A stretch of DNA of 64,000 nt from Octopus sinensis. Taxonomy: Eukaryota. The stretch is taken from positions 88,040,001-88,104,000 of the forward strand of contig NC_042999.1 of assembly GCF_006345805.1 (NCBI RefSeq), read 5' to 3'. Under the pieces are notes generated by a model that saw nothing but the letters and a program-made list of their open reading frames with translations, was not told the origin of the DNA and searched no databases. Made by a program: the position numbers and the translations under genes. Positions 9,290-53,700 of the stretch are shown here, in pieces (position 1 is the first letter of the stretch; each line of letters starts with the position of its first letter).

Positions 9290-10135
9290 AATCAAGCAAA
9301 ACCTCTACTTGATCTTACAAAAATGCTATTCATGGAGCAGATCATACTCATTCTAACCAGGTACAAAATTGTCCCGGTCCTCTATTTTACAGACAATGTG
9401 GAAATTATCCACAACATAAATATATCACCGACAATATTCTCAGGTCATAACATGATAGAACTGACAATGTATGGCCCGGAATTAACCAAAGATAAACTCC
9501 GTACAGATGGCGCTGAAACCCTATCCAACCGAAATGTCTATAAGGCTGACTGGAAGTCACTTGAAAAACAGATACTCCAGCAGGACTGGCCTAAAATGCC
9601 TCTCTATGCAAGATATTAAACTCAATAAAATCATGTCAATAATGCGAGCCATATGCATTAAATATGTCCCAGAGAAGGAAGCCAATACACACAAAAACAT
9701 CATTCCCCGAGACAGGAGAATACTTATTCAGCGGAGAATAAAGATCTCGAATAGTTTAAACAAATACCTTAATGCCAGTGTGAAATTCCACCTGACAGAG
9801 GAACTCTTCGAAACAGAAAATAAACTCAAAATCTCCCATGAAAAAGAAAGAGAAAGAGAAACCTGGGCAGTCGAAAATATAAAAAGAAATACTAAATTCT
9901 TCTACACATTGCCAAAGAAGTCTGCCTCAGTACGTTGTAAGATAGGGCCCCTATTTGGTAAAAATGGCTCACTAACTGCAGACCCGGGGAACATAAGTGA
10001 AGCACTAAATAAACAATTCCGAAGTGTTTTCACTTCCCCATTGGAAAATATGTAAATGAACAAGCCAAAGGAGTTGTTCAATGTAATGAATCTATTCGGA
10101 AAAGAGGAAAACCATCAATTACATCAACATAACAG
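9290..10135 (+). mobile_element. CR1/L2-group LINE ORF2 fragment (end of APE endonuclease and linker)
   Basis: SPTIFSGHNMIEL (SDHN-like APE motif), then ERETWAVENIKRNTKFFY...KIGPL...ISEALNKQFRSVFT, typical of the CR1 linker; frameshifted. Confidence 0.8.
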
Positions 10136-10447: not shown

Positions 10448-11731
10448 CGAGGGGCGTTCAATAAGTAATGCCTCTGACCCACTTCCCATAGCAGTAGAGC
10501 AACGAAACTTGGCACAGGTATTAGTCTTTTTCTACATAGGAACAACCCAGAGGTACGCATTTCTCCCATCGTTTGATGCAGTTCTGGAGACCGTTTTCGT
10601 AGAAGACCCCAGCTTGGTCCTCCAACCACGACGTGACTTCAGAAATCAAGGCTGCATCATCTGGGAAACGCTTTCCTTTCAAAAACAACTTCATGGCTGG
10701 GAAGAGGTGAAAATCAGAGGGTGCAAGGTCAGGAGAGTAGGGGGATGGGGGAATAGTTCATAGCCGCATGCCTATGCTTCTGATCTGGCGACACGCGAGT
10801 TGTGGACCGGAGCGTTGTCCTGCAGGAGGAGGATGCCTTTGCTGATCTTGCCCCGCCTCTTGGTTTCGATAGCTTCTCTTAATTTCCTCAAAAGTGAAAC
10901 ATGATAGGCTCCTGTAATTGTGGTACCCTTTGCCAGGAAATCTGTCATCACTACTCCGTCCTGGTCCCAGAAGACTGTGAGCATGACCTTGCCAGCAGAG
11001 GGCTGCACCCTTGCCTTCTTTGGAGGAGGTGAGTCATGGTGCTTCCACTGCATTGACTGGGCTTTGGTCTCTGGATCATAGTGATGGACCCAGGTCTCAT
11101 CCTGTGTAATCAGTCTTTTGAAACATTTTGACTCATCTTCTTGGCACATCCCTAAATTCTCGCTTCTGGAATTCTTGCGTTCTTGCTTCTGGAAAAGTGT
11201 GAGCAACCTGGAAATCCATCTGGCAGACACCTTTTGCATATGCAAATGGTCATGAATGATAGTTTCCACAGACCCGGTACTAATCTTGACCTCATGGGCT
11301 ATTTGGCGAATAGTTATGCGTCGATCTTCCAAAATGGCAGCCTCAACTTGACGGACAGATGCCTCATCAATGGCAGAAGGGGTGCGACCAGATCTGGGAG
11401 CTGTTTCCACAGAGTTCCAACCATGTTTGAATTCATGATGCCAGCGTTTTACAAGGTCATATGATGGGGCATCATCACCATAAGTTACTTTCATTTCATT
11501 AAAAGTCTCCTGTGGTGTGCGTCATTTCAAATACAAAAACCGGATCACTGTTCGACACTCAACAGGCTCCATTTCCCACCTGACTCATTTCAAACACCTG
11601 TAAATCAGAAACCACAATTAGTTCGGAGCTGTAATTCACCACTTAATCTATAGTGATATCAATAATTGCACATTCAGCTAGATCAAACAAAGGCAAGTGG
11701 GTCAGAGGCATTACTTATTGAACGCCCCTCG
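10448..11731 (-). mobile_element. Full-length mariner (DD34D) transposon, 1284 bp, perfect 37-bp TIRs, TA target duplication
   Basis: TIR cgaggggcgttcaataagtaatgcctctgacccactt at 10448-10484 and its exact reverse complement at 11695-11731; TA at 10446-10447 and 11732-11733. Confidence 0.97.
10521..11572 (-). pseudogene. Mariner transposase pseudogene (~350 codons; two nonsense codons, one 1-bp deletion)
   Basis: MEPVECRTVIRFLYLK*...TQDETW...QDNAPVH...*...HPP(fs)YSPDLAPSDFHLFP...SYVEKD*. There are 34 residues between the 2nd and 3rd Asp after repairing the frameshift in a C5 run. Confidence 0.95.
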
Positions 11732-22052: not shown

Positions 22053-22268
22053 GGCGGCGAGCTGGCAGAAACGGCAGCACGCCGGGCGAAATGCTCAGTG
22101 GTATTTCGTCTGCCGTTAAATTCTGAGTTCAAATTCCGCCGAGGTCGTCTTTGCCTTTAATACATTCGGGGTCGATAAATTTAGTATCAGTTGCGTACTG
22201 GGATCGATCTAATCGACTGGCCTCTCCTACCAAATTTCGATCTTGGCCTAGAGTAGAAAAGAATATTG
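22053..22268 (+). mobile_element. Family B SINE, near full length
   Basis: ggcggcgagctggcagaa...gagttcaaattccgccgaggtcg...gtcgataaatttagtatcagttgcgtactgg...agtagaaaagaatatt. Confidence 0.88.
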
Positions 22269-24249: not shown

Positions 24250-25290
24250 GTGTGTTCAGCTGAATAAAATTACTGCTGTTATTTGTCAACAACAACTTCT
24301 GGCGGTATATATTTCCATGACATGAAAGAAGTTTATGGTGACGATGCACCATCATATGACGTAATCATGTACAGGCATCGCCAGTTCATATGTGCTCGGA
24401 CACCGGTGGAAACTGATCCTATTCCTGGACAACCACATTCCGCCATTTATGACGATACCATCCATAAAGTGCGAGCCGACATTTTGGAGGATCGCCGCAT
24501 AACTATTCGGCAACTAGCCCAATAAGTTAAATAAGTGTAGCGTCTGTGGAAAAAATCATTCACGACCATTTGCACATACGGAAGTTGTCTGTACGATGGA
24601 TTTCTCAGATGTTCACACCTTTTCAGAACCAGGATCAAGTCAATTGCTCCCAAACTCATTTGGCAATGTGCCAAGAAAACGAGGAGGACTTTTTCGATAA
24701 AATTATCACACAGAATGGAACATGGGTCCATCACTATGATCTTGAGATTAAAGTCCCGTTGAAGCAATGAAAGCATGCTAGCTCACCATCTCCAAAGAAG
24801 GCTCGTGTCCAACCTTCATCACACAAGGTAATGCTAATCGTCCTTTGGGAGCAGCTCGGAGTAGTGATGATGGATTTTCTGGCAAAGTGTACCACAATTA
24901 ACAGGGCATATTATACTTCTTTGCTACAGAAATTATGGGACTGCATCAAAGCAAGAACGCATGGCATGCTGACCAATGTCATCCGCCTCCTCCAAAACAA
25001 CGCCCCAGTTCACAATGCACATGTTAACAAGATGAAAGCATACTCCTGGGGTTATGAAATCCTTACTCAATGCCCCCACTCTCCCACCTCGCATTATCTG
25101 ACTTCTACCTCTTTCCAACCAAGAAGTCATTTTTTGAAGGAAAAGCACTTTCTATATGATGAACTTATTTCTGAGGTAATGTCTTGGCTCTAGACGCAAT
25201 CTACCGACTTCTACAGATGAGCCCTTCACAGCTGCATAAAGCAATGAGAGAGGTGTGTGATTATTTGGTGGCTATGTAGAGGACTAATAA
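24250..25290 (+). pseudogene. Heavily decayed mariner transposase, same subfamily as 10521-11572
   Basis: DMKEVYGDDAPSYD...ILEDRRITIRQ...IIHDHLH...WVHHYD...PKKARVQPS...LLQNNAPVHN; many stops and frameshifts; TIRs not recognised. Confidence 0.9.
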
Positions 25291-25301
25291 TTATGGCAAA
25301 T

Positions 25302-25722
25302 AGCGGTGAGTTGGCAGAAATGTTAGCAGGCCGGGCGAAATGCGTAGCCGTATTTCTTCAGCCGTTACGTTCTGAGTTCAAATTCCGCTGAGTCGACTTT
25401 GCCTTTCTTCCTTTCGGGGTCGATAAATTAAGTACCAGTTACGCACCGGGTCGATATAATCGACTTAATCCGTTTGTCTGTCCTTGTTTGTCCCCTCTGT
25501 GTGTAGCCCCTTGTGGGCAGTAAAGAAATAAGAAATGTTAGCACGCCGTACAAAATGTTTAGCGGCATTTCGTCTGTCTTTACATTGTGTATTCAAATTC
25601 TGCCGAGGTCAACTTTGCCTTTCATCCTTAATTAATAAATTAAGTACCAGTTGCGTACTGGAGTCGATCTAATCGACTGGCCCCTTCCCCAAAATGTCGG
25701 GCCTTGTGCCGAGAGTAGAAAA
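25302..25722 (+). mobile_element. Two tandem family B SINE copies
   Basis: Repeated gttctgagttcaaattccg...gtcgataaattaagtaccagtt core. Confidence 0.8.
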
Positions 25723-31384: not shown

Positions 31385-32680
31385 GTGTGTATATATACAT
31401 TATGTGTGTTTAACTCCACAAACTCGTAAATTCAATTCAGCATGGCTTCGCTGTGGCAGGGAGTGTCTAACACAGCTCTTACATCACATTGAGGATATAC
31501 TTAAAGCCTTGGGAACAGGTTCGTACTCAGGTTCGACAGGGTTGACCATGAAAACTTCTACACTGGATTGAGTATTTCCTGTCGAATAGAACACAATATG
31601 TTGTGGGCGATGGAGTCTACTCAAGCCCAGCAAAAGCCACCAGTCGTGCCCCTCAGGGGACTGTCTTGGGTCCAATCTTCTTTATAATCTACACAAATGA
31701 CCTTTCCAGCATCGTAAATTACTGCAAATTGAAAATATTTGCTGATGAGACAAAGCTTCAACAGATCATCAATGAAGAAGAAGTCCGAACTCAAATCCAG
31801 TCTGATCTCTATGCGGTGAGTCAATGAGCAGACAAAAACAAAATGCAACTAAAGAAGGGAAAATTTGAGCTGATGCATTTTGGAAGAAAGACTATACTAA
31901 AACAGCCATACTCTCTTCCTTCAGTGGAACTGCTCACAGCATCTAATAATATCAGAGACCTAGGAGTAATTGTTGGTAACAATCTCAGTTGGAGTGCCCA
32001 CATCAACAATAAAGTCGATATAGCTCGTATGATGAGCTCCTGGATCTTAAGACCCTTCCGGTCCAGAGAACTAGGTGTCATCATTCCACTTTTGTCCTCC
32101 TTTGTACGGCCACACCTCGAATACTGCTGCCCCATGTGGTCTCCCAATACAAAGCAAAATATCTCGAAAATTGAATCACCCCAGAGGGCACTCACTAAAC
32201 GAATTAAGGGCATGACCGATCTCAATTACTGGGACCACCTTAAAGCCTTGAAACTCTACTCTCTCCAGCGCCGTCGCGAGCGGTACATCATTTGCACGAT
32301 GGGGAGAATATACCGCCAGCATTGCCCAAACGACCTGAACCTTAATTTCAAGGTTCATCCAAAGCTGGGACCTTAGGACATACGTCCCTTGCGCAATTCA
32401 AGATGGATCACAACATATAGGTACACTACGACACAATTTCTTTTTCTCAACGAGTTCTTCCCTGTTTAGCATTGTCCCAAAACTGATCAAAAAGGAAAAG
32501 GATCCCATCACCTTTAAACGGAGTCTGGACACATTTCTTCAAGGAATACCAGGTAAGCCACCTATACCTGGATATAACTCACTACTAAAACTTGACTTAA
32601 AAAGGATTTAGATAATCATATCAGGTGGTGTTATTAAGTTAGACATGGCCTGGACCAATCTTTGGTCGAAGCATATCTAA
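31385..32680 (+). mobile_element. CR1/L2-group LINE, 5'-truncated RT-thumb-3'UTR
   Basis: CLTQLLHHIEDIL...APQGTVLGPIFFIIYTNDL...KIFADETKL...FVRPHLEYCCPMWSP...LKLYSLQRRRER. Confidence 0.92.
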
Positions 32681-34652: not shown

Positions 34653-35370
34653 CGCGTCGACATTGTATGACACTTATAGGTCTCACTTGTGGGTAACCAT
34701 TGGTTCTGTGAGCCAATAACGGCATTGGCACATGTCACATCCTTCGATAGAGATTCTAGTCAGTCTTGTTTACCTTTTGATGTATCATTATCAGTAATAT
34801 TTCATTGTGTATATGTAAGCATTTTCAGATGTTCCGCTAATATTTGAAGAAAATTTGATAGCAATTTTTTTCTTGGCGAGTGACCTAGTCGAATCATTGT
34901 CCTTAGTTTACCAATATAGATATTCTGGTAAGATAGTAGTTGTTGCTGCATAGTCTCAGGTCAGCCATTTCAAGCTAACATATAACTAAAAGCAGCCAAA
35001 ACTGATCACCCAGTCTACGTTTCTAGAACTACATTGCTCTGTGTAAACCTAAAGCCTAACTATAAAGTGTGGTCTTCGGAAACATAAGCAGATGGAATGA
35101 TTATCTAAATCGTCTGTCGTTGACTTTGGGTAAAATTATATTATAGGGACTAACATGATGAGAAAACAATTACTTAAGGGGAGAATTAATGCGGAAATCT
35201 TAGTATGGACTAGTAAAAGAAAAAATAACATTTTGCAGCATTAAAGATCATTAAATTCAAGAGCTTCTAAATAAACAGCTTCTAAATTTAAATGCTTCTA
35301 AATACATGAAGTAGTAACATACTTTGCTGATCATATCTAAGAAACTTATACAAAAATAATGGCAGATGTA

Positions 35371-35467
35371 GGACAAATGGTAGCTGAATGAATTGGAAAG
35401 GCTTGTCAAGAACATGAAATGCACAATATTCAAGTCGAAGTAAGGAGGTCTAGGGTCCGGTTGCGAA
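35371..35467 (+). pseudogene. rpsK: Bacterial ribosomal protein S11 fragment
   Basis: GQMVAE*IGKACQEHEMHNIQVEV(fs)GLGSGCE resembles S11 AQMxAExAxKAxxEHGxxxxxVxVKGPGxGRE. Confidence 0.7.
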
Positions 35468-35497: not shown

Positions 35498-35602
35498 ACG
35501 CATGAAATTGTTCGAGAAAATATTACAATATCAGTTATGTATTCAGGTAGCATTAAAGGAACAGGAACAAGCTGTCCTAGTTTTGAAGATTAAATTCCTT
35601 TT
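35498..35602 (+). pseudogene. mnmG: Bacterial MnmG/GidA tRNA-modification enzyme fragment
   Basis: THEIVRENITISVMYSGSIKGTGTSCPSFED*IPF matches the conserved THExIxxNLxxSPMYSGxIxGxGPRYCPSIEDKxxRF motif. Confidence 0.8.
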
Positions 35603-35620
35603 GAATAAGTAGAGAATAAG

Positions 35621-35656
35621 ATAATTGGAACTTTAAAATATATTTCTCCTGAAATT
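35621..35656 (+). pseudogene. Ser/Thr protein kinase subdomain VIII-like shard (PrkC/PknB-type?)
   Basis: IIGTLKYISPEI fits GTxxYx[AS]PE, but is only 12 codons. Confidence 0.4.
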
Positions 35657-35807
35657 ACTCACAAGTTCTTTCATCTCACCCTGGTTTTGTGCATCTACAT
35701 TTTCAACTGATATTTGCCTTGCAAAATTACTCCATTTATATCGGATTTGATAATTTACCGCGTGCTTATAAATGTAATGGTATATAAAAAGGAGTAATGT
35801 TTATTGC

Positions 35808-36199
35808 CGTTACTACCATTTTAACTCCAGGAGGATGCCTCCAGATGGTTATTCAATGCAGTCTGCACCCTGTATATATTGCATGCAGGTAGCAAACCAC
35901 TACCACTTCCAGTGTTGGAACCATCAGACCGTACGGTTTCAAGCTATTTCTACTTATCCTCAGTGGTGGATACTCGTCCGCTAAAGATAGCAATAGTTCA
36001 TTCCAGCTCACAATATATAGAAAAATAAGAATCCACAACTGAAGATGAACACAAATAGCTCGAAACCGTACGGTTTGGTGGTCCTGTTGCTGGAAAATGG
36101 TAGGGATTCGCTTCTCTGTATGCAATATATCCAGGGTGGAAACTGCATCGAATAACCAGCTGGAGGAGGCATCCTCTTGGGGTTAAAATGGTATTAACG
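35808..36199. mobile_element. Foldback MITE-like element (~390 bp, ~170-bp imperfect arms)
   Basis: cgttactaccattttaactccaggaggatgcc...gtacggtttcaagctattt vs the reverse complement of the right half cgttaataccattttaaccccaagaggatgcc...gtacggtttcgagctattt. TSD ambiguous (TA or TTAA/TTAC). Confidence 0.75.
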
Positions 36200-36635
36200 C
36201 TACTTATGGAGCAGTCATGTTGAAGTGGTGATAAACATTACTTCTCAGTACAGTTACTGCTTTCATCTCTTATAGAGGTTTTCTAACTATCTAATTCGCT
36301 CATTGGTAAATAAAAACATCGATATACTAGAAAACTTAGCATTAATGCTGCTGCTGCTTTTGATTTTGAACGATCATATCCTATGTAATAAAAAATTGAA
36401 GCACATGCTTGAATCAGCAGAATTTTCGTATAATAACTTATTCATGCGCTTCTTCAATTTGTTCACTTGAAGATAACGCTAAAAAAAATGCACCCTTTAT
36501 GATCTAGCATGAAATGCTACCAAAAACTAAAAATTTGTATGAATATCAGTTCACGATTTGTTAATGAATTAGATATTCGGGCTGTATCACATTCTGATGC
36601 TGCAGCATATTTTCACCGAAATTAAGCGGAAACAG

Positions 36636-36777
36636 TTATTCTGGCACTGTTAAATAAGTTAATAAACGAATAACAATTGATACCTTTAAGGTAAAATAAA
36701 TTCTTTTGACAATATGTTTTGAATATATCGACACTTGTTGTTTTTTTAAGATTTTCTCTTTTTACCTTCTGCATTCA
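36636..36777 (-). pseudogene. secY: Bacterial SecY N-terminal fragment
   Basis: KHIVKRIYFTLKVSIVIRLLTYLTVPE* matches SecY TM1 (KxxxxRIxFTLxxLIxxRxxxxIxVP); lies immediately after the rplO stop as in the spc operon. Confidence 0.75.
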
Positions 36778-36780
36778 CTA

Positions 36781-36940
36781 TTACACAACCTCTACTTTTC
36801 CAGCTGCTGTTGCAGTTGCTTCTTTTGCAGAGTTTGAAATATTATAAATTTTTCATATTTAAACTCTCAGTCATTTTACGACTATCTCAAATTTTGAGAA
36901 AAGTTTTATCAAAATGTATTATTTGTATGTTTCTAATGTC
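36781..36940 (-). pseudogene. rplO: Bacterial ribosomal protein L15, C-terminal half
   Basis: ...ISNSAKEATATAAGKVEVV* matches the L15 end (xSxxAKEAIExAGGKVEVI). Confidence 0.85.
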
Positions 36941-37313
36941 TGCAAAAGCTACTGATGTACCTGATGTTATTAAGAAACCAATCAAAGGGGCTAAAAATTC
37001 ATTAGTAAGAGTACCACTTGTAGGAACACCAGCTGCTTATGAAATAATGGGATGTTTTGGAGCAGGTCAGGAATGATTATATCATTTATAAAGGGCCTGG
37101 AGTTATTACTGAAGGATGTGTTCGTGCTGTAACTGAACACGCTGGATTAGCAGATGTTTATGCAACATCATTAGGCTCAATTATACCAATTGATATGATT
37201 AGGGCTACAAAAGAAGAATTGAAATCATAAAGTATAGTTGACCAAGTTGCTAGATGAAGTCGTAAAGCAACTGAAGAATTATAAGAATAGTAGAAGTATG
37301 GGAGAATGAACTA
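36940..37313 (+). pseudogene. rpsE: Inverted duplicate of the 3' part of the rpsE pseudogene, inserted into rplO
   Basis: 374 bp, reverse complement of 37579-37952 with 3 mismatches. Confidence 0.93.
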
Positions 37314-37578
37314 TTATGATTAATATATTAAATATTTCATTTTTTAAATCTTTCAAATTAAAGATTGTATAGCATTTTGTATTAATGTGTGTAAATCCCT
37401 CTTTTGGAATTTCTTGGAAAATGGAAGTTTACCCCCCCCCCTTCAAATCAAGGGCGTACTCCTCCACCGGTACGAACATTTTGATCTTTCTTCACTTTAC
37501 CTGAAGTTTTTCCTCGTCCTAATCTGTTGCAGGAATGACGAGAACCTTCTGTATATTTTAAATCATTCTCTTATATTC
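37314..37578 (-). pseudogene. rplO: Bacterial ribosomal protein L15, N-terminal half
   Basis: [43 protein letters not shown](fs, G10 run)*TSIFQEIPKEGFTHINTKCYTIFNLKDL. Confidence 0.92.
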
Positions 37579-37607
37579 TAGTTCATTCTCCCATACTTCT
37601 ACTATTC

Positions 37608-38229
37608 TTATAATTCTTCAGTTGCTTTACGACTTCATCTAGCAATTTGGTCAACTATACTTTATGATTTCAATTCTTCTTTTGTAGCCCTAATCATATT
37701 AATTGGTATAATTGAGCCTAATGATGTTGCATAAACATCTGCTAATCCAGCGTGTTCAGTTACAGCACGAACACATCCTTCAGTAATAACTCCAGGCCCT
37801 TTATAAATGATATAATCATTCCTGACCTGCTCCAAAACATCCCATTATTTCATAAGCAGCTGGTGTTCCTTCAAGTGGTACTCTTACTAATGAATTTTTA
37901 GCCCCTTTGATTGGTTTCTTAATAACATCAGGTACATCAGTAGCTTTTGCAGTTACTAATCCAACACGTGCATTTTTATCACCAATGATTACGACTGCGG
38001 CAAATCTGAAATGACATTCATATTTTGTCACTCTTGTTATGCAATTGTTACAATTGTTTCAGAAAACTCATTACCAGCTTGATTGCAATTAAATGAAATT
38101 TGTTCAGTTAATGATGTTGTTTTAGGTTCATCTTGGTTATTATTGTTCTCTTTTTTCTTTTTTGCTTGCTCTTGAACAGTCGATATCAAATATACAATTT
38201 TTTTTCTGTCACATGTTTCTATTATTCAT
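37608..38229 (-). pseudogene. rpsE: Bacterial ribosomal protein S5 with a long N-terminal extension
   Basis: NEFSETIVTI(fs)RVTKYECHFRFAAVVIIGDKNARVGLVTAKATDVPDVIKK...VRVPLEGT...EIMGCFGAG(fs)[39 protein letters not shown]...EEL*. Confidence 0.95.
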
Positions 38230-38234
38230 TCTGA

Positions 38235-38520
38235 TTATAATTTTATACCATCTTCACGAGCTGATTCAAAAATGAATACTTGTTCATGATAAAACTAACC
38301 ACTGCAATCAAATACAATATTATGAATTTCGTTTAAGTTGAGCATTTTCAGCAATATCTGCGCCAGTGCTTCTTTAACAGCAGCAATAATTGAAGTTGAG
38401 TTTGATCTATTAATTGTGAATAACAATGAACACTTAATTTGTTCACATTTAATCTTGGGAGTAGTAAAGTACCTGCAATTTTATTTTAAAGACAGTAGCG
38501 TCTTTTGTTTTACAGTTAAT
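38235..38520 (-). pseudogene. rplR: Bacterial ribosomal protein L18
   Basis: KRRYCL*NKIAGTLLLPRLNVNKLSVHCYSQLID...IHNIVFDCSG*FYHEQV...ESAREDGIKL* matches L18 (SGTxxRPRLNV...YAQIID...VVFDRGGYxYHG...AARExGLKF). Confidence 0.88.
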
Positions 38521-38774
38521 AGAACATAAAGAATAATAATGTAAAAAATAGACATGGCTTAAGATATATAGAATCGAAGAACAAAATACCAGTTATAATG
38601 TGTGGGAATTATAAGTCTCTAAAGAAAATTATTTTTTTATAAATATTACGGTTTTAATTTTGAAAGGTAATTACTTTATATTTAATTTGTTAAGCTTTTA
38701 TAGAATACAACACAAGTGTTCCTGACTTATTTGCATCTTTCTTTCTCTTTCTCCCTCTCTCTCTTACATATATT

Positions 38775-39112
<338 letters not shown>

Positions 39113-43625: not shown

Positions 43626-44918
43626 GTGGGCAGGCTAAAAAGTTCATAGGCTGACTATGATGGTGTGTCGCTAGAGTTGTGAAATCTTGCATGCATTCAT
43701 TTTAATTCTTATTATTATTAACTGCATTGCTTCGTTCCAGATAAACATATACCAAACTGTTTAAAGAAGACTTTAAATGTAACTAGTAGCAACATGTGTT
43801 GAAAATGGACAATATTTGGCACCGTGGTGTTATCCAGTACCTGCAGAAAAAAGATATAGCCCCCAATGACATTCATGTTCACATAGTTGATATATTAGAG
43901 GATGATGTTTCAGCTTTATCAACAATGCAAAAGTGGGAGCTGAATTTGGGAGGGTAAGGGGAAGTTTTAAAGACGATCCAATGTCTGGACATTCTGCAAC
44001 TGACACCATTGCGGAAAACATTGATTGTGTTCACCACAAGCTGATGGATGACAGGCGAGTGACTATAAATCAAATAGCCAATGCTGCTAACATGCCTTAT
44101 GTGAGAATTACGAATATTCAGCGAGATGAGCTTTGCCTGACAAAGGTTTCTACTCAGTGGGTGCCACGTCTTCTGACTCCTGATAAAAAGTGCATTAAGC
44201 TAATCAAATCACGGAAAAATCTGACATTGTTTGAGGCAGATTCTGCTAGTTTACATGGATGTTTCCAAATCCAGGATGATTGTAGGCTGCATCACTTTGA
44301 ACCAACGACAAAGAGGCAATTCATGCGGTGAAAACACTCCACCTTAGTTGCTCCAAAGAAGGCTATGATCGTTTCATTTCATCTATAGGGAAGGCGATGG
44401 CCACTCATTCTCGAGATGCAAAAGGCACCGAGTTTATTGACTACTTCAAAAGGGCCACACCTTCAATGGAAAGGGAGTACTATTCCAACTTGCTGAGGTA
44501 GTTACGAACGTTTATCAAAACCAAACACCCAGGAAAACCGACAGGAGGGTCTTTTTTTAAGAAGACAATATTCTAATGCACAAACCATTGGTTCCAATGG
44601 CCGCTGTGCGTTTTATGGCTTTAAAATGATTGATAACATTCCTTATTCTTCTGATTTGACCTCTTCTGGCTATCATCTGTTACCTAAACTGAAACAAAAA
44701 AAAGCAACACTTGGCTGGGAAGCAGTATCTCAGTGATAATGACGTCATATCTGCTGTTGGTGACTTATCAGACTAACAGGATGAAAGCCCGTCGCCAATG
44801 GGATCCAAGCAAAGCAACAACAATGGAAGGTATGTGTGCACCGCAAGAGAAATATTCTTCACTTGGTCACATTCCATAAGTATCTTAGTCAGCCTATGAA
44901 CTTTTCAGCCGTCCCTCG
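43626..44918 (+). mobile_element. Decayed mariner of a second subfamily with imperfect TIRs
   Basis: Left ta-gtgggcaggctaaaaagttcataggctgacta vs right (rc) tacgagggacggctgaaaagttcataggctgacta. Transposase remnants MDDRRVTINQIA...WVPRLLTP and a PYSSDL-like motif. Confidence 0.88.
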
Positions 44919-49814: not shown

Positions 49815-50025
49815 AGACGGCGAGCTAGCAGAATTTTTAGCGCACTGGACGCCATGCTTAGCGGTATTTCGCCCGTCGCTATGTTCTGAATTCGAATTCC
49901 ACCGAGGTCGACTTGGCCTTTTATCTTTTCGGTGTTGATAAATTAAGTACCAGTGAAACACTTGGGTCGATATATAGTCCCCACCTCACAAATTTGAGGC
50001 CTTGTGCCTCCAGTAAAAGGGCTTA

Positions 50026-50100: not shown

Positions 50101-53045
50101 CATTCAGTAGTTTTATTTTTATAGCGTGCTTTCACTTCACTACCGAGCGCAGCTCTATGTGCCTTAGGTATGTGCTCTGATTTGTTGTGATGCTCTGATG
50201 GTTATTGCATGGAAAGTGTTCTGCGTAGGATGTGTGCAGTGCCTAGTAGTGCAATTTTCTGTATGTTATATGTGTTTGTAAGTCCTGATATTTTTGTTAT
50301 GTATTTGTCTGAATACTTTTTTATCATGCCTAATGCACCTACTATGAGAGGAATTGTTTCTATTTTTAGATTCCACATTCTGGTTACCTCTATTTCTAGG
50401 TCTTTGTATTTTGAAAGTTTCTCCATTTCTTTTAGAGTCACGTTGTCATCTGCCGGTATTGATACATCAATTAGAAAGCATTTTTTTTCTTCATGATCTC
50501 TGACAACTATATCTGGTCTGTTGGCCTTAATTTCTCTATCTGTGTGTATCGGCATATCCCAGAGTATGGTTGCTTTCTCGTTTTCTGTAACCTTTTCTGG
50601 TGTGTGCCTATACCATCTTTTTTCTGTTTTTATTCCATAATGTTGGCATAGCTTCCAGTGTATGTAGGTTCCAACTCTGTCATGTCTGTGAATATATTCC
50701 TTCTTAGCCAGGACTGGGCAGCCAGAGATAATATGATTTATTGTTTCTTGTCCATCTCCACATATTCTGCAGTTACTTGTTATATTTCTTTTCATTACAT
50801 GTCTTTGGTAATTTCTGGTGGGGAGGCTTTGGTCTTGTGCTGCAATTAAAAATCCCTCTGTCTCTGCTTTGAGTCCTGAGCTTCTCAACTATTGCTGGGA
50901 TTTTTCTTTGTCTATTTCTTTTGCGTTTAGTTTAGTCCAGTATTTACCATGAAGGGGCTTTTCTTGCCATCGTTTTATCATTGTTCGTTGCTGTTCTGTT
51001 TTTAGTTTGGATTTCATTTGTTTTATAGCTTTTGTTGTTTCTTCATCTTCTTCTTCTTCTTCATATTTATTAGGTGGTATGATTTCTTGCTTGTATTTGT
51101 CAGCTTCCTTAAATACTGAGAACAGTTTTTTGTTTTGCTCGTGTTTTGCCGCTATTTGTATCAGTTTTCCTTCCTTCTGAAGTAGATATTTTTGCAGTCC
51201 TATGGTGGATATTTTATAGTAGTTTTCGAGTTGTATAAGGCCTCTACCACTTTCTATACGTTGTATATATAGTCTTTCTATGTCAGATTTTGGGTGATGC
51301 ATCCTAGATCCTGTCAGTATTTTTCTTGTTTTCCAATCTATTTTGGTCAGTTCATTTCGTGTCCAGTTAAGGATATTGTAGCTGTAACTTATAACTGGGA
51401 CAGCTAAAGTGTTAATACCTATTATCTTGTTTTTAGCATTGAGCTCTGTTTTTAGTATTGATCTAACTCGTCTATAATATTCTTTTTTTATTTTCTTTTT
51501 CATTTGTGTGTGTTGTGTGTTATCTAGTTCATGGATTCCTAAGTATTTGTAAGTTTGGCTTTGGTCTAATTATTTTATTTCATTGGTTTTATCTAGTGTG
51601 ATGTTGCTACTCTTAACTAGTTTTCCTCTTTTCAGGGTTACTTTGGCGCATTTTTCTAATCCAAATTTCATATCTATTTCTTTGGTAAATCCATGAACTG
51701 TCTTTAATAGTGTTTCCAGCTGTTTGTAATTTGCAGAGTATAGTTTTAGGTCATCCATATATAAAAGGTGGCTGATCGTTTTGCCGTAACATTTATATCC
51801 GCATCCAGTTCTATTTAACATATCAGATAGAGGTGACAGTGCCAAGCAGAAAAGGAGTAGAGAGAGAGTGTCTCCCTGGAATATTCCTCTTCTAATGGGG
51901 TTGGCTTTGGTTTTCATGAGTCCCTCTTTTGTTTGGAGCTGTAGCACGGTTTGCCATTTATTCATAGAGTGCCTTATGAATGTTATAAGTGTTGGTGCTA
52001 CTTTGTTAATGGTTAGTGTTTCGAGGATCCATGTGTGGGGGATGCTATCAAACGCCTTTTTTGTAATCGATCCAGGCCATACTGAGACCTTTCTTATTTC
52101 TGTGGCTGTCTTCCGTTATGGCTTTATTAATCATTAGTTGATCTTTACAGCCATATGAGCCTTTGCGGCATCCTTTCTGCTCTTCTGGAAACAGGTTGTT
52201 TTCGTCCAGGTGCTTGTTCAACCTTTGCGTTATCACTGCAGTAAATGCCTTGTATATTGTAGGGAGACATGTTATTGGTCTGTAGTTTTCTGGTTTTGCT
52301 GTCTCATTTGATTTGGGAATTAAGATGGTTTTCCCCTTCGTGAGTCATTCAGGCATTGTCTCTGGCTCTGCTAGCATGCTGTTAAAGTTTTCAGCCAGCT
52401 TTTTGTGCATTACTGTTAGATATTTCAACCAGAAGTTGGGGATCTTGTCATGCCCAGGTGCCTTCCAGTTGCTTAGTCTTTGCAGTGCCTGGATGACCTC
52501 TTCAGTTGTTTTGGGGGTCCAAAGTTGCTCAGATGCTGAGTTTGTTGTTTTCATACTTCTTTTTTTTGTTTGTTCGTTCGCCGACCATATTTATCTCCAG
52601 AATTCTTCCACTTCTTCTGCCGTTGGTGTTGCAATGACTTCTATTTTATTTTTGCCAAGTTCTTGGTAGAACTTTTTGGGGTTGCAGTTGAACTTTTTGT
52701 TTTGTTCAAAGAAGCGCTGGCGTTTCTCGTACCGGCGGATCCTTTGTGCTTTGGCAAGGATATCTTGCTTCAGCTTTTCTTTTATCTCAGGTATATTTTT
52801 TTCTGTGATGTTATATTTGCGGAGTATTTTTGTTTTCTTTTTGTTGCTCAGTAGCGTTGATTGTCTACTGATTTCATCAAGAATCGACAGACCTTTTCTC
52901 ATTTTTTGTATTTTGTTTTGGATGTTATTTATCCACAGGGTTTGTTTGGGTGGTGGTACTCCTGTTTGGATGGGTTTGAGTGAGTATCTTTTGTGGCTGC
53001 AGTGGCTGCTGCGTATACTAAGTCATTTAGCTTAGTGATATCGCT
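50101..53045 (-). mobile_element. Dong/R4-clade LINE, 5'-truncated (~2.9 kb), RT + CCHC + RLE, inserted in (TAA)n
   Basis: NWKAPGHDKI, NYRPITCLP, WIDYKK, RGIFQGD, HLLYMDDLKLY (RT); CRICGDGQETINHIISGC (CCHC); RPDIVV...IDVSIP...KLSKYKDL (RLE). (ATT)n on both sides (50027-50100, 53046-53316); several stops and frameshifts. Confidence 0.96.
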
Positions 53046-53066
53046 TATTATTATTATTATTATTAA

Positions 53067-53108
<42 letters not shown>

Positions 53109-53125
53109 CATTATTATTATAGTTA

Positions 53126-53157
<32 letters not shown>

Positions 53158-53212
53158 GTTATCATTATTATTATTATCATTATTATTATCGTTATCATTA
53201 TTATTATTGTTA

Positions 53213-53271
<59 letters not shown>

Positions 53272-53275
53272 GTTA

Positions 53276-53316
<41 letters not shown>
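53046..53316. repeat. (ATT)n/(ATC) microsatellite
   Basis: Direct reading. Confidence 0.98.
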
Positions 53317-53700
53317 GAGCTAGCAGAATCATTAGCTGCCGGGCTAAATGCTAAGCAACATTTAGCCCATGTATACGTGCTGGGTTCAAATTTCGCCGAG
53401 GACGACTTTGCATATCATACTTTCGGAGACAATAAAATGAGTACCAGTTGAGTACCATTCGACGAAATCGAATTAACCTCCACTCTGGAATTGCTGGCCT
53501 TGTGCCACTATTGGAAACCATTATTATTATTATTATTAAGACTGTGACATTTCAGAATCTTTAGTGCGTCAGACAATATTCTTAATGGCATTTCTTCCGG
53601 CTATTTACAATCACAATTCAACGGCGTCGACTTTACCTTTCATACTTTCGAGTTCGATAAATTAAAGTACCAGTCAAATACAAGGATCAATCTAAACAAC
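53317..53700 (+). mobile_element. Two tandem degenerate family B SINEs separated by a short (ATT)n
   Basis: gagctagcagaatc...gggttcaaatttcgccgagg; second copy with gtcgactttacctttcatactttcgagttcgataaattaaagtaccag. Confidence 0.7.

Follow-up and report, generated by a model that had tools for sequence, protein, structure and literature searches.

A decayed spc operon fragment of probable Spiroplasma-type origin within eukaryote-type chromosomal DNA

How does a piece of a bacterial ribosomal-protein operon come to lie in repeat-rich eukaryote-type DNA, is it still of use there, and from which bacterium did it originate? These questions are raised by a tract of about 2.3 kb (including an interrupting duplicate) in a 64-kb stretch of contig NC_042999.1, which is referred to as the window and by whose numbering all positions are given. 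Between 36205 and 38515 on the minus strand, the tract carries remnants of rplR (L18), rpsE (S5), rplO (L15) and the 5' part of secY, one after the other. With a probability of roughly 80%, it is assumed to be a functionless fossil of a lateral DNA transfer from a Mollicute with genetic code 4 to a eukaryotic host chromosome.

The nature of the genes was determined by several searches. Pfam matched the domains Ribosomal_S5 (1.2e-10) and Ribosomal_S5_C (1.4e-9), while L18p gave weak matches in two frames. The stitched (conceptual) translation of S5 matched S5 chains of the PDB with 1e-34, and for L15 and L18 values of 6e-9 and 2e-9 were obtained. As judged from these scores, the homology of the tract to ribosomal-protein genes is far above chance. 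Moreover, the Pfam, PDB and tblastn matches are colinear with a segment of the spc operon, their order on the minus strand being the expected one. The parts of the tract are given below together with the evidence for their assignment, where L001 denotes a contig with a second decayed copy.

38235..38515, minus strand: remnant of rplR (L18), assigned by Pfam L18p, PDB (2e-9), tblastn with Spiroplasma L18 and codon view
37608..38234, minus strand: rpsE (S5) pseudogene, assigned by Pfam, PDB and codon view, with lesions common to L001
37577..37607, minus strand: spacer of 31 nt between S5 and L15, without rpmD
37314..37576, minus strand: 5' part of rplO (L15), assigned by homology and codon view
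36938..37313, plus strand: inverted duplicate of 37579-37954 within L15, assigned by repeat search, Pfam S5_C and the alignment with L001
36781..36937, minus strand: 3' part of rplO (L15), with the terminal '...SAKEATATAAGKVEVV' followed by TAA TAG
36205..36774, minus strand: 5' remnant of secY, assigned by tblastn and hidden Markov model matches and by homology to L001 down to ~36200

Starting from the stop codon of L18 (TAA at 38237-38235), 55 codons rich in K, N, E and Q (38234-38070) precede the conserved start of the S5 core, 'EFSETIV'. This agrees with the original prediction, made from the letters alone, which had described an N-terminal S5 extension of ~55 codons rich in K, N and E. 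S5 ends with its own stop codon (TAA at 37610-37608), and the codon equivalent to the start of L15 is found at 37576-37574, 31 nt past this stop. Since an L30 gene comprises ~180 nt, no L30 (rpmD) can be accommodated in the spacer, and the distance of ~30 bp without room for L30 stated earlier was thus borne out. The three motifs named at that time, HFRFAAVV, DVYA.SLGS and LKYTEGS, were all found in the translations. The secY remnant extends to ~36205 and therefore past position 36636, at which the region had originally been taken to begin. An L6 gene at 36300-36940 was considered as a candidate and rejected, as this region consists of the 3' end of L15 and of secY.

None of L18, S5, L15 and secY is intact; all four are dead. 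L18 has lost its first ~10 codons and comprises the in-frame stops TAA (after 'RRYCL') and TAG ('FDCSG*FYH') as well as one frameshift near 38390. The extension of S5 offers no usable ATG, and its frame is broken at ~38045, just ahead of 'RVTK', where 8 nt are found vs 3 expected. A 9-nt deletion takes out the VTKGGR loop, a -2 frameshift follows at ~37815 in the inter-domain linker, and further lesions are an in-frame TAA at 37664-37662 and a TGA at 37637-37635. The start codon of L15 is mutated to ATA (37576-37574) and its second codon is TAA; further downstream, 6 codons are deleted in the GRG...KTSG loop, a TGA occupies the position of a conserved Gly, and a frameshift lies in a poly-G run at ~37440. 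secY retains an ATG at 36774-36772 with a frameshift directly after it; SecY residues ~10-46 are recognisable and are followed by heavy decay until the gene is cut at about codon 195 (~36205). The only open frames in the tract have lengths of 50-88 codons, and an intact frame under purifying selection, as it would characterize a functional acquired gene, was found for none of the genes. The decay also affects the searches: a word-indexed protein search with the stitched S5 gave no matches, which can be explained by the pseudogene having too few exact 5-mers in common with real proteins. The GC content is uninformative, with 31.9% for the insert, 32-35% for the flanks and 32-34% for Spiroplasma operons.

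A search with the S5 N-domain (74-residue translation) yielded best matches of only 43-54% identity. The same search led to P0036, a 58-residue open reading frame that shows the same odd residues (LVTA[KR]AT..PDV.K.PIKGAK). It lies on contig L001 (1582 bp), which belongs to the Logan assembly of SRR11869390 and was found in two samples. L001 aligns to the minus strand of the window in two blocks, 38153 to 37314 and, immediately following, 36937 to ~36205, with 80% identity over ~1520 aligned bases. Three lesions are common to both copies, namely the frame break in S5, the 9-nt deletion and the -2 shift. The first, second and third codon positions differ between the copies to about the same extent (17.8%, 20.9% and 20.0%; chi-square p = 0.63), and many of the indels between them are not multiples of three. 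The common lesions and the even distribution over codon positions indicate that the genes were dead before the two copies parted and that neutral drift has acted since then. The presence of the same lesions in a second copy implies vertical inheritance of the insert itself. Two DNA-pattern scans of JGI metagenomes for further copies found none.

The comparison with L001 also clarifies the interruption of L15. The segment 36938-37313 (376 nt) is an inverted copy of 37579-37954 and comprises the C-terminal half of S5 and the spacer together with the bases immediately preceding L15. Its arms of 374 nt are 99% complementary with 3 internal differences, and Pfam accordingly matched S5_C on the plus strand as well, whereas on the plus strand of 35601-39000 nothing bacterial beyond this duplicated S5_C was found. 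Beyond the duplicate, the 3' end of L15 resumes at 36937-36781. L001 has no counterpart of the duplicate, which appears in the alignment as a clean insertion, and without it the tract is colinear with L001. The duplication is thus a later, lineage-specific insertion.

For the question of the donor, the gene order was compared to eight loci of code-4 Mollicutes, comprising two Spiroplasma endosymbionts (of Seladonia tumulorum, L002, and Antitype chi, L003), an S. melliferum-like contig (L082), S. culicicola, the endosymbiont of Anurida maritima (L084), Mycoplasma capricolum, Mesoplasma lactucae and one further Mollicute. All eight showed the order L18-S5-L15-SecY without L30, and no relative carrying rpmD was found among them, as it was to be expected from the donor proposed at the outset. 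In those loci of Spiroplasma, Mycoplasma capricolum and Mesoplasma for which L15 was called, S5 and L15 are separated by 12-19 nt. Bacilli, an Acholeplasmatales genome and Xianfuyuplasma showed a gap of ~200 nt containing L30. Within the Mollicutes, L30 has been reported only for the Acholeplasma/phytoplasma group (Grosjean et al., PMC4014445). Five Erysipelotrichales loci (L029, L030, L038, L043 and L048) also have no L30, with L15 directly after S5, which shows that the loss of rpmD is not confined to Mollicutes; L018 and L023, also labelled Erysipelotrichaceae, have kept an L30-sized gap. The absence of rpmD fits the donor clade, but it is a coarse marker and not an exclusive one.

The S5 extension, the motifs and the genetic code were compared for the same loci. 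From the L18 stop to the S5 core, 55 codons were counted here vs 53 in a Citri-type locus, and S5 comprises 203-268 aa in code-4 Mollicutes vs 166 aa in B. subtilis. HFRFAAVV together with DVY[AT].S[LI]GS occurs in six of the eight code-4 loci and is absent from the other 78 Bacillota loci, while the L15 motif L[KQ]YT[EDP]G is also present in four Erysipelotrichales loci. Both conserved Trp positions that could be aligned read TGA, namely Trp118 of SecY (36376-36374), with TGA also in Spiroplasma references and in L001, and Trp44 of a nearby scrap of S11 (35328-35330), with TGA in Spiroplasma references too. The other TGAs of the tract fall on Gly or Leu positions.

Similarity searches and trees point in the same direction. 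The best genome matches of the stitched S5 were two Spiroplasma with 49-50% identity including the extension, vs 41-48% over the core only for Bacillaceae. Over 146 columns of the S5 core, the identity was ~60% to Citri-clade Spiroplasma, 58% to S. syrphidicola, 57.5% to S. culicicola (Apis clade), 50% to mycoides and 49% to Bacillus, and L001 alone yielded the same ranking. The margin between Citri-type and Apis clade (60% vs 57.5% for S. culicicola) is small, and the Chrysopicola clade was represented by S5 only. The concatenated phylogeny was calculated from L18, S5 and L15 by neighbour-joining (440 columns, 500 bootstraps). It placed the two copies together in 100%, inside the code-4 Mollicutes in 99.8% and as sister to Citri-type Spiroplasma in 88% of the bootstraps. 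A tree of S5 only with 132 taxa grouped the copies with this clade and away from the outgroups in 93%. The top matches of a profile search were Spiroplasma, Entomoplasmataceae and mycoides, with the weak point that the profile had been built from such sequences. Based on gene order, S5 extension, motifs, TGA at two Trp positions and trees, the donor is assigned to the Spiroplasma-Entomoplasmatales-Mycoides clade, as originally suggested, and was probably a Spiroplasma near the Citri-type lineages.

Some of the sequences collected for this comparison showed peculiarities of their own. P0181, a Spiroplasma-type S5 of 216 aa, is labelled in NCBI as 'hypothetical protein Zmor_008688 [Zophobas morio]', which points to contamination or transfer in the beetle assembly. 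L088, a 14-kb contig of a Citri-like Spiroplasma (Logan SRR32488676), carries the S5 nearest to that of the window (61.6% over the core). Several of its operon genes were called short, with S14 of 41 aa, L6 of 139 aa, L15 of 76 aa with a frameshift and Adk of 145 aa; this could reflect a degenerating symbiont, another insert or assembly errors. In the locus of the Anurida maritima endosymbiont, no L15 was called, and its sequence reads as a fragment of 88 residues; L14 and L5 were also uncalled, which may indicate decayed genes or sequence errors in this endosymbiont genome.

The tract is enclosed in 64 kb of sequence with eukaryote-type repeats on both sides. Next to the truncated end of secY, two further features were determined:

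35808..36199, no strand assigned: fold-back element of 392 nt, self-complementary (74% between the arms), adjoining the truncated secY end
35316..35445, plus strand: rpsK (S11) remnant 'QMVAEWIGKACQEHEMHNIQVEVR', with tblastn E 3e-5 and phmmer i-E 2e-5

No other copy of the fold-back element was found within the window, and it may be either a host element or a product of rearrangement. The S11 remnant shows 67% identity over 24 residues to residues 64-87 of Spiroplasma S11, lies on the opposite strand to the main tract, and its weak similarity may run on to ~35560. S13, InfA, Adk, RpoA, L17 and Map were not detectable beside it. Probing the window with every gene from a 20-kb operon region (S. 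melliferum-like) revealed no further fragment except S11. The scrap suggests that a longer piece of the operon was inserted, later inverted and mostly lost.

The remainder of the window has a eukaryotic appearance, with dense microsatellites, mariner-like transposase remnants and reverse-transcriptase open reading frames over tens of kb. The mariner-like remnants lie at 10772-11494 (minus strand), 24831-25193 (plus) and 43933-44331 (plus), the first of them with an open frame of 240 codons. Frames of reverse-transcriptase/LINE type are found at 50202-53022 (minus), 31471-32373 (plus) and 9507-10055 (plus), adjoined at 52932-53448 by long simple repeats coding for poly-Ile/Thr. A SINE-like repeat (70-125 nt, 75-88% identity) occurs in six places, of which the copy at 38823-38947 is located ~300 bp from the end of L18; the others lie near 934 and at 22068-22190, 25371-25438, 25559-25629 and 49882-49953. 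A tRNA scan and an Rfam scan of the whole window gave no matches.

The following course of events would account for these observations. A piece of the spc operon, comprising L18-S5-L15-SecY and the S11 part that now appears as a rearranged scrap, would have been integrated into a host chromosome, presumably in germline cells via ordinary break repair and from a donor living in or near the germline. The reading frames were lost before the lineages of the two present-day copies separated, with neutral drift afterwards. Later, in the lineage of the window, the 376-nt inverted duplication was placed into L15, and the DNA beyond secY was probably inverted or lost. Since the insert was inherited, as the second copy shows, access to the germline must have occurred. 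The heritable or intracellular symbiosis that had been originally proposed is a reasonable inference, to which the second copy with the common lesions lends some support. A resident heritable symbiont and a passing infection are not told apart by the sequence. It is furthermore possible, although we put it forward only tentatively, that the copy in the window and that in SRR11869390 are orthologues in two related hosts, whose ancestor would have carried a Spiroplasma-like bacterium near its germline.

Several points weigh against this interpretation. The integration is read from assembled sequence, and L001 may be a paralogue within one species instead of an orthologue from a second one. With the 153 sites at which the two copies agree, the clade is supported by only 76% and the position next to Citri-type Spiroplasma by only 57%. 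The trees are based on distances and contain a long, AT-drifting branch, with only eight loci of code-4 Mollicutes in the concatenated set, and they comprise neither Hominis-group nor Pneumoniae-group Mycoplasma; M. pneumoniae was judged only via its PDB scores (84 bits for S5 vs 123 for B. subtilis). Host DNA and Mollicutes are both AT-rich, and AT decay could draw a pseudogene toward Mollicutes. Finally, TGA for Trp was observed at two codons only, and the change from TGG to TGA is a single transition.

These points have to be considered together with the other explanations for the tract. DNA of a living Mollicute, present as contaminant or symbiont, could have been misjoined to a host contig by the assembler, since Mollicutes are common in invertebrate samples, mix-ups do occur, as seen for the S5 annotated as a beetle protein (P0181), and an inverted repeat could in principle stem from a chimeric read. 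A living bacterium would, however, hardly carry essential ribosomal genes with multiple stops and frameshifts, and the tract covers only ~2.3 kb inside 64 kb of repeat-rich eukaryote-type DNA. The neutral divergence from L001 over the codon positions, the decayed homologue with the same lesions in an independent read set and the 3 sites at which the repeat arms differ, unlike a fold-back read artefact, also speak against a misjoin, which we regard as very improbable. Still less credible, to the point of being negligible, is a domestication of the transferred genes for the use of the host, for which no evidence was found and which is contradicted as far as a protein function is concerned. Every gene has stops and frameshifts, L15 has lost its start codon and is split by the duplication, substitutions are equally frequent at first, second and third codon positions, and there are indels whose lengths are not divisible by three.

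An integrated fragment could also originate from another lineage without L30, such as a Hominis- or Pneumoniae-group Mycoplasma or Erysipelotrichales. L30 is missing in all Mollicutes outside the Acholeplasma/phytoplasma group (PMC4014445) and in the five Erysipelotrichales loci, four Erysipelotrichales loci share the L15 motif, and M. marinum and M. todarodis, both isolated from cephalopods, are Hominis-group species (PMC11567158), a group absent from the trees. Against this, the S5 motifs and the top similarities, including the profile search with its mentioned weakness, point to Spiroplasma. The PDB score of M. pneumoniae S5 lies well under that of B. subtilis, and its L15 and L18 were not among the PDB matches. 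Erysipelotrichales are not part of the 99.8% clade and have the standard genetic code, while two conserved Trp positions are TGA here. Such a donor is therefore considered unlikely. Even with the donor clade assigned correctly, the transfer could have taken place without any heritable or intracellular symbiosis, from a passing infection or a bacterium of the gut or the prey, e.g. a crustacean Spiroplasma, and by accidental entry into a germ cell. This would be in line with the finding of a single small fragment and no other bacterial piece in the 64 kb with the operon-region probes, and in literature searches, neither Spiroplasma in cephalopods nor this transfer was found to have been reported. 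Documented bacterium-to-animal transfers, in contrast, come mostly from germline-resident symbionts, e.g. Wolbachia, and Spiroplasma includes many maternally inherited symbionts. A transfer of this kind has to be taken seriously, but is considered less likely than not.

The inserted tract by itself has no functional consequence and is of moderate natural-history interest. Dead bacterial inserts nevertheless form a record of microbes with past access to the animal germline, and here the donor clade is one famous for maternally inherited arthropod symbionts and not the Mollicute lineage so far known from the presumed hosts. Provided that host and orthology are confirmed, the tract would constitute a datable marker of an association since lost and a clean example of bacterial DNA decaying neutrally in an animal genome. 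With orthologous copies and a cephalopod host, the insert would represent the first molecular trace that a Spiroplasma-type symbiont associated with the germline has left in cephalopods. This symbiont would be distinct from the Hominis-group gut Mycoplasma, and it could be dated via the presence or absence of the insert across species. To our knowledge, no germline bacterial symbiont of cephalopods is known.

Among known systems, the closest counterpart of the tract is the spc operon of Citri-type Spiroplasma (L082, L002 and L003), which shows the same order L18-S5-L15-SecY without L30 and an S5 of ~204 aa with an N-terminal extension of 47 residues. GGRHFRFAAVVVIGD, AGLADVYTKSLGS and IDQIAKLRGKTVEEL are common to these loci and the insert, as is the L15 start LQYTDGARHSKKRLGRG, and TGA stands at the conserved Trp positions of SecY and S11 in both. 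In contrast, the S5 core of the insert is only ~60% identical to theirs, whereas S. melliferum and S. culicicola share 84%, and the spacer comprises 31 nt in the insert vs 12 nt. Furthermore, the genes of the insert are all broken, with L15 interrupted and secY truncated.

A different relation is found to the Mollicutes of cephalopod guts, in which Mycoplasma is a core taxon (PMC9082898). They, too, are Mollicutes without rpmD (PMC4014445), and they occur in the presumed host group. M. marinum and M. todarodis, which were cultured from cephalopods, are members of the Hominis group (PMC11567158), and these Mycoplasma live in the gut and not in the germline, while the insert falls in the Spiroplasma-Entomoplasmatales-Mycoides clade. 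Thus, the original reference to Mollicutes as common associates of cephalopods concerns gut Mycoplasma and a lineage other than the donor clade, and its link to the insert is weak.

The event as such is of a known type, namely bacterial DNA fossilised in an animal genome, of which the insert is a new example. Inserts derived from Wolbachia in the nuclear genomes of insects and nematodes are rearranged, non-functional, neutrally decaying and vertically inherited. By analogy, the tract described here would likewise represent a bacterial fragment of endosymbiont type in host chromosomal DNA, with the differences that its donor was a Mollicute and not an alphaproteobacterium and that it amounts to ~2.5 kb in the window.

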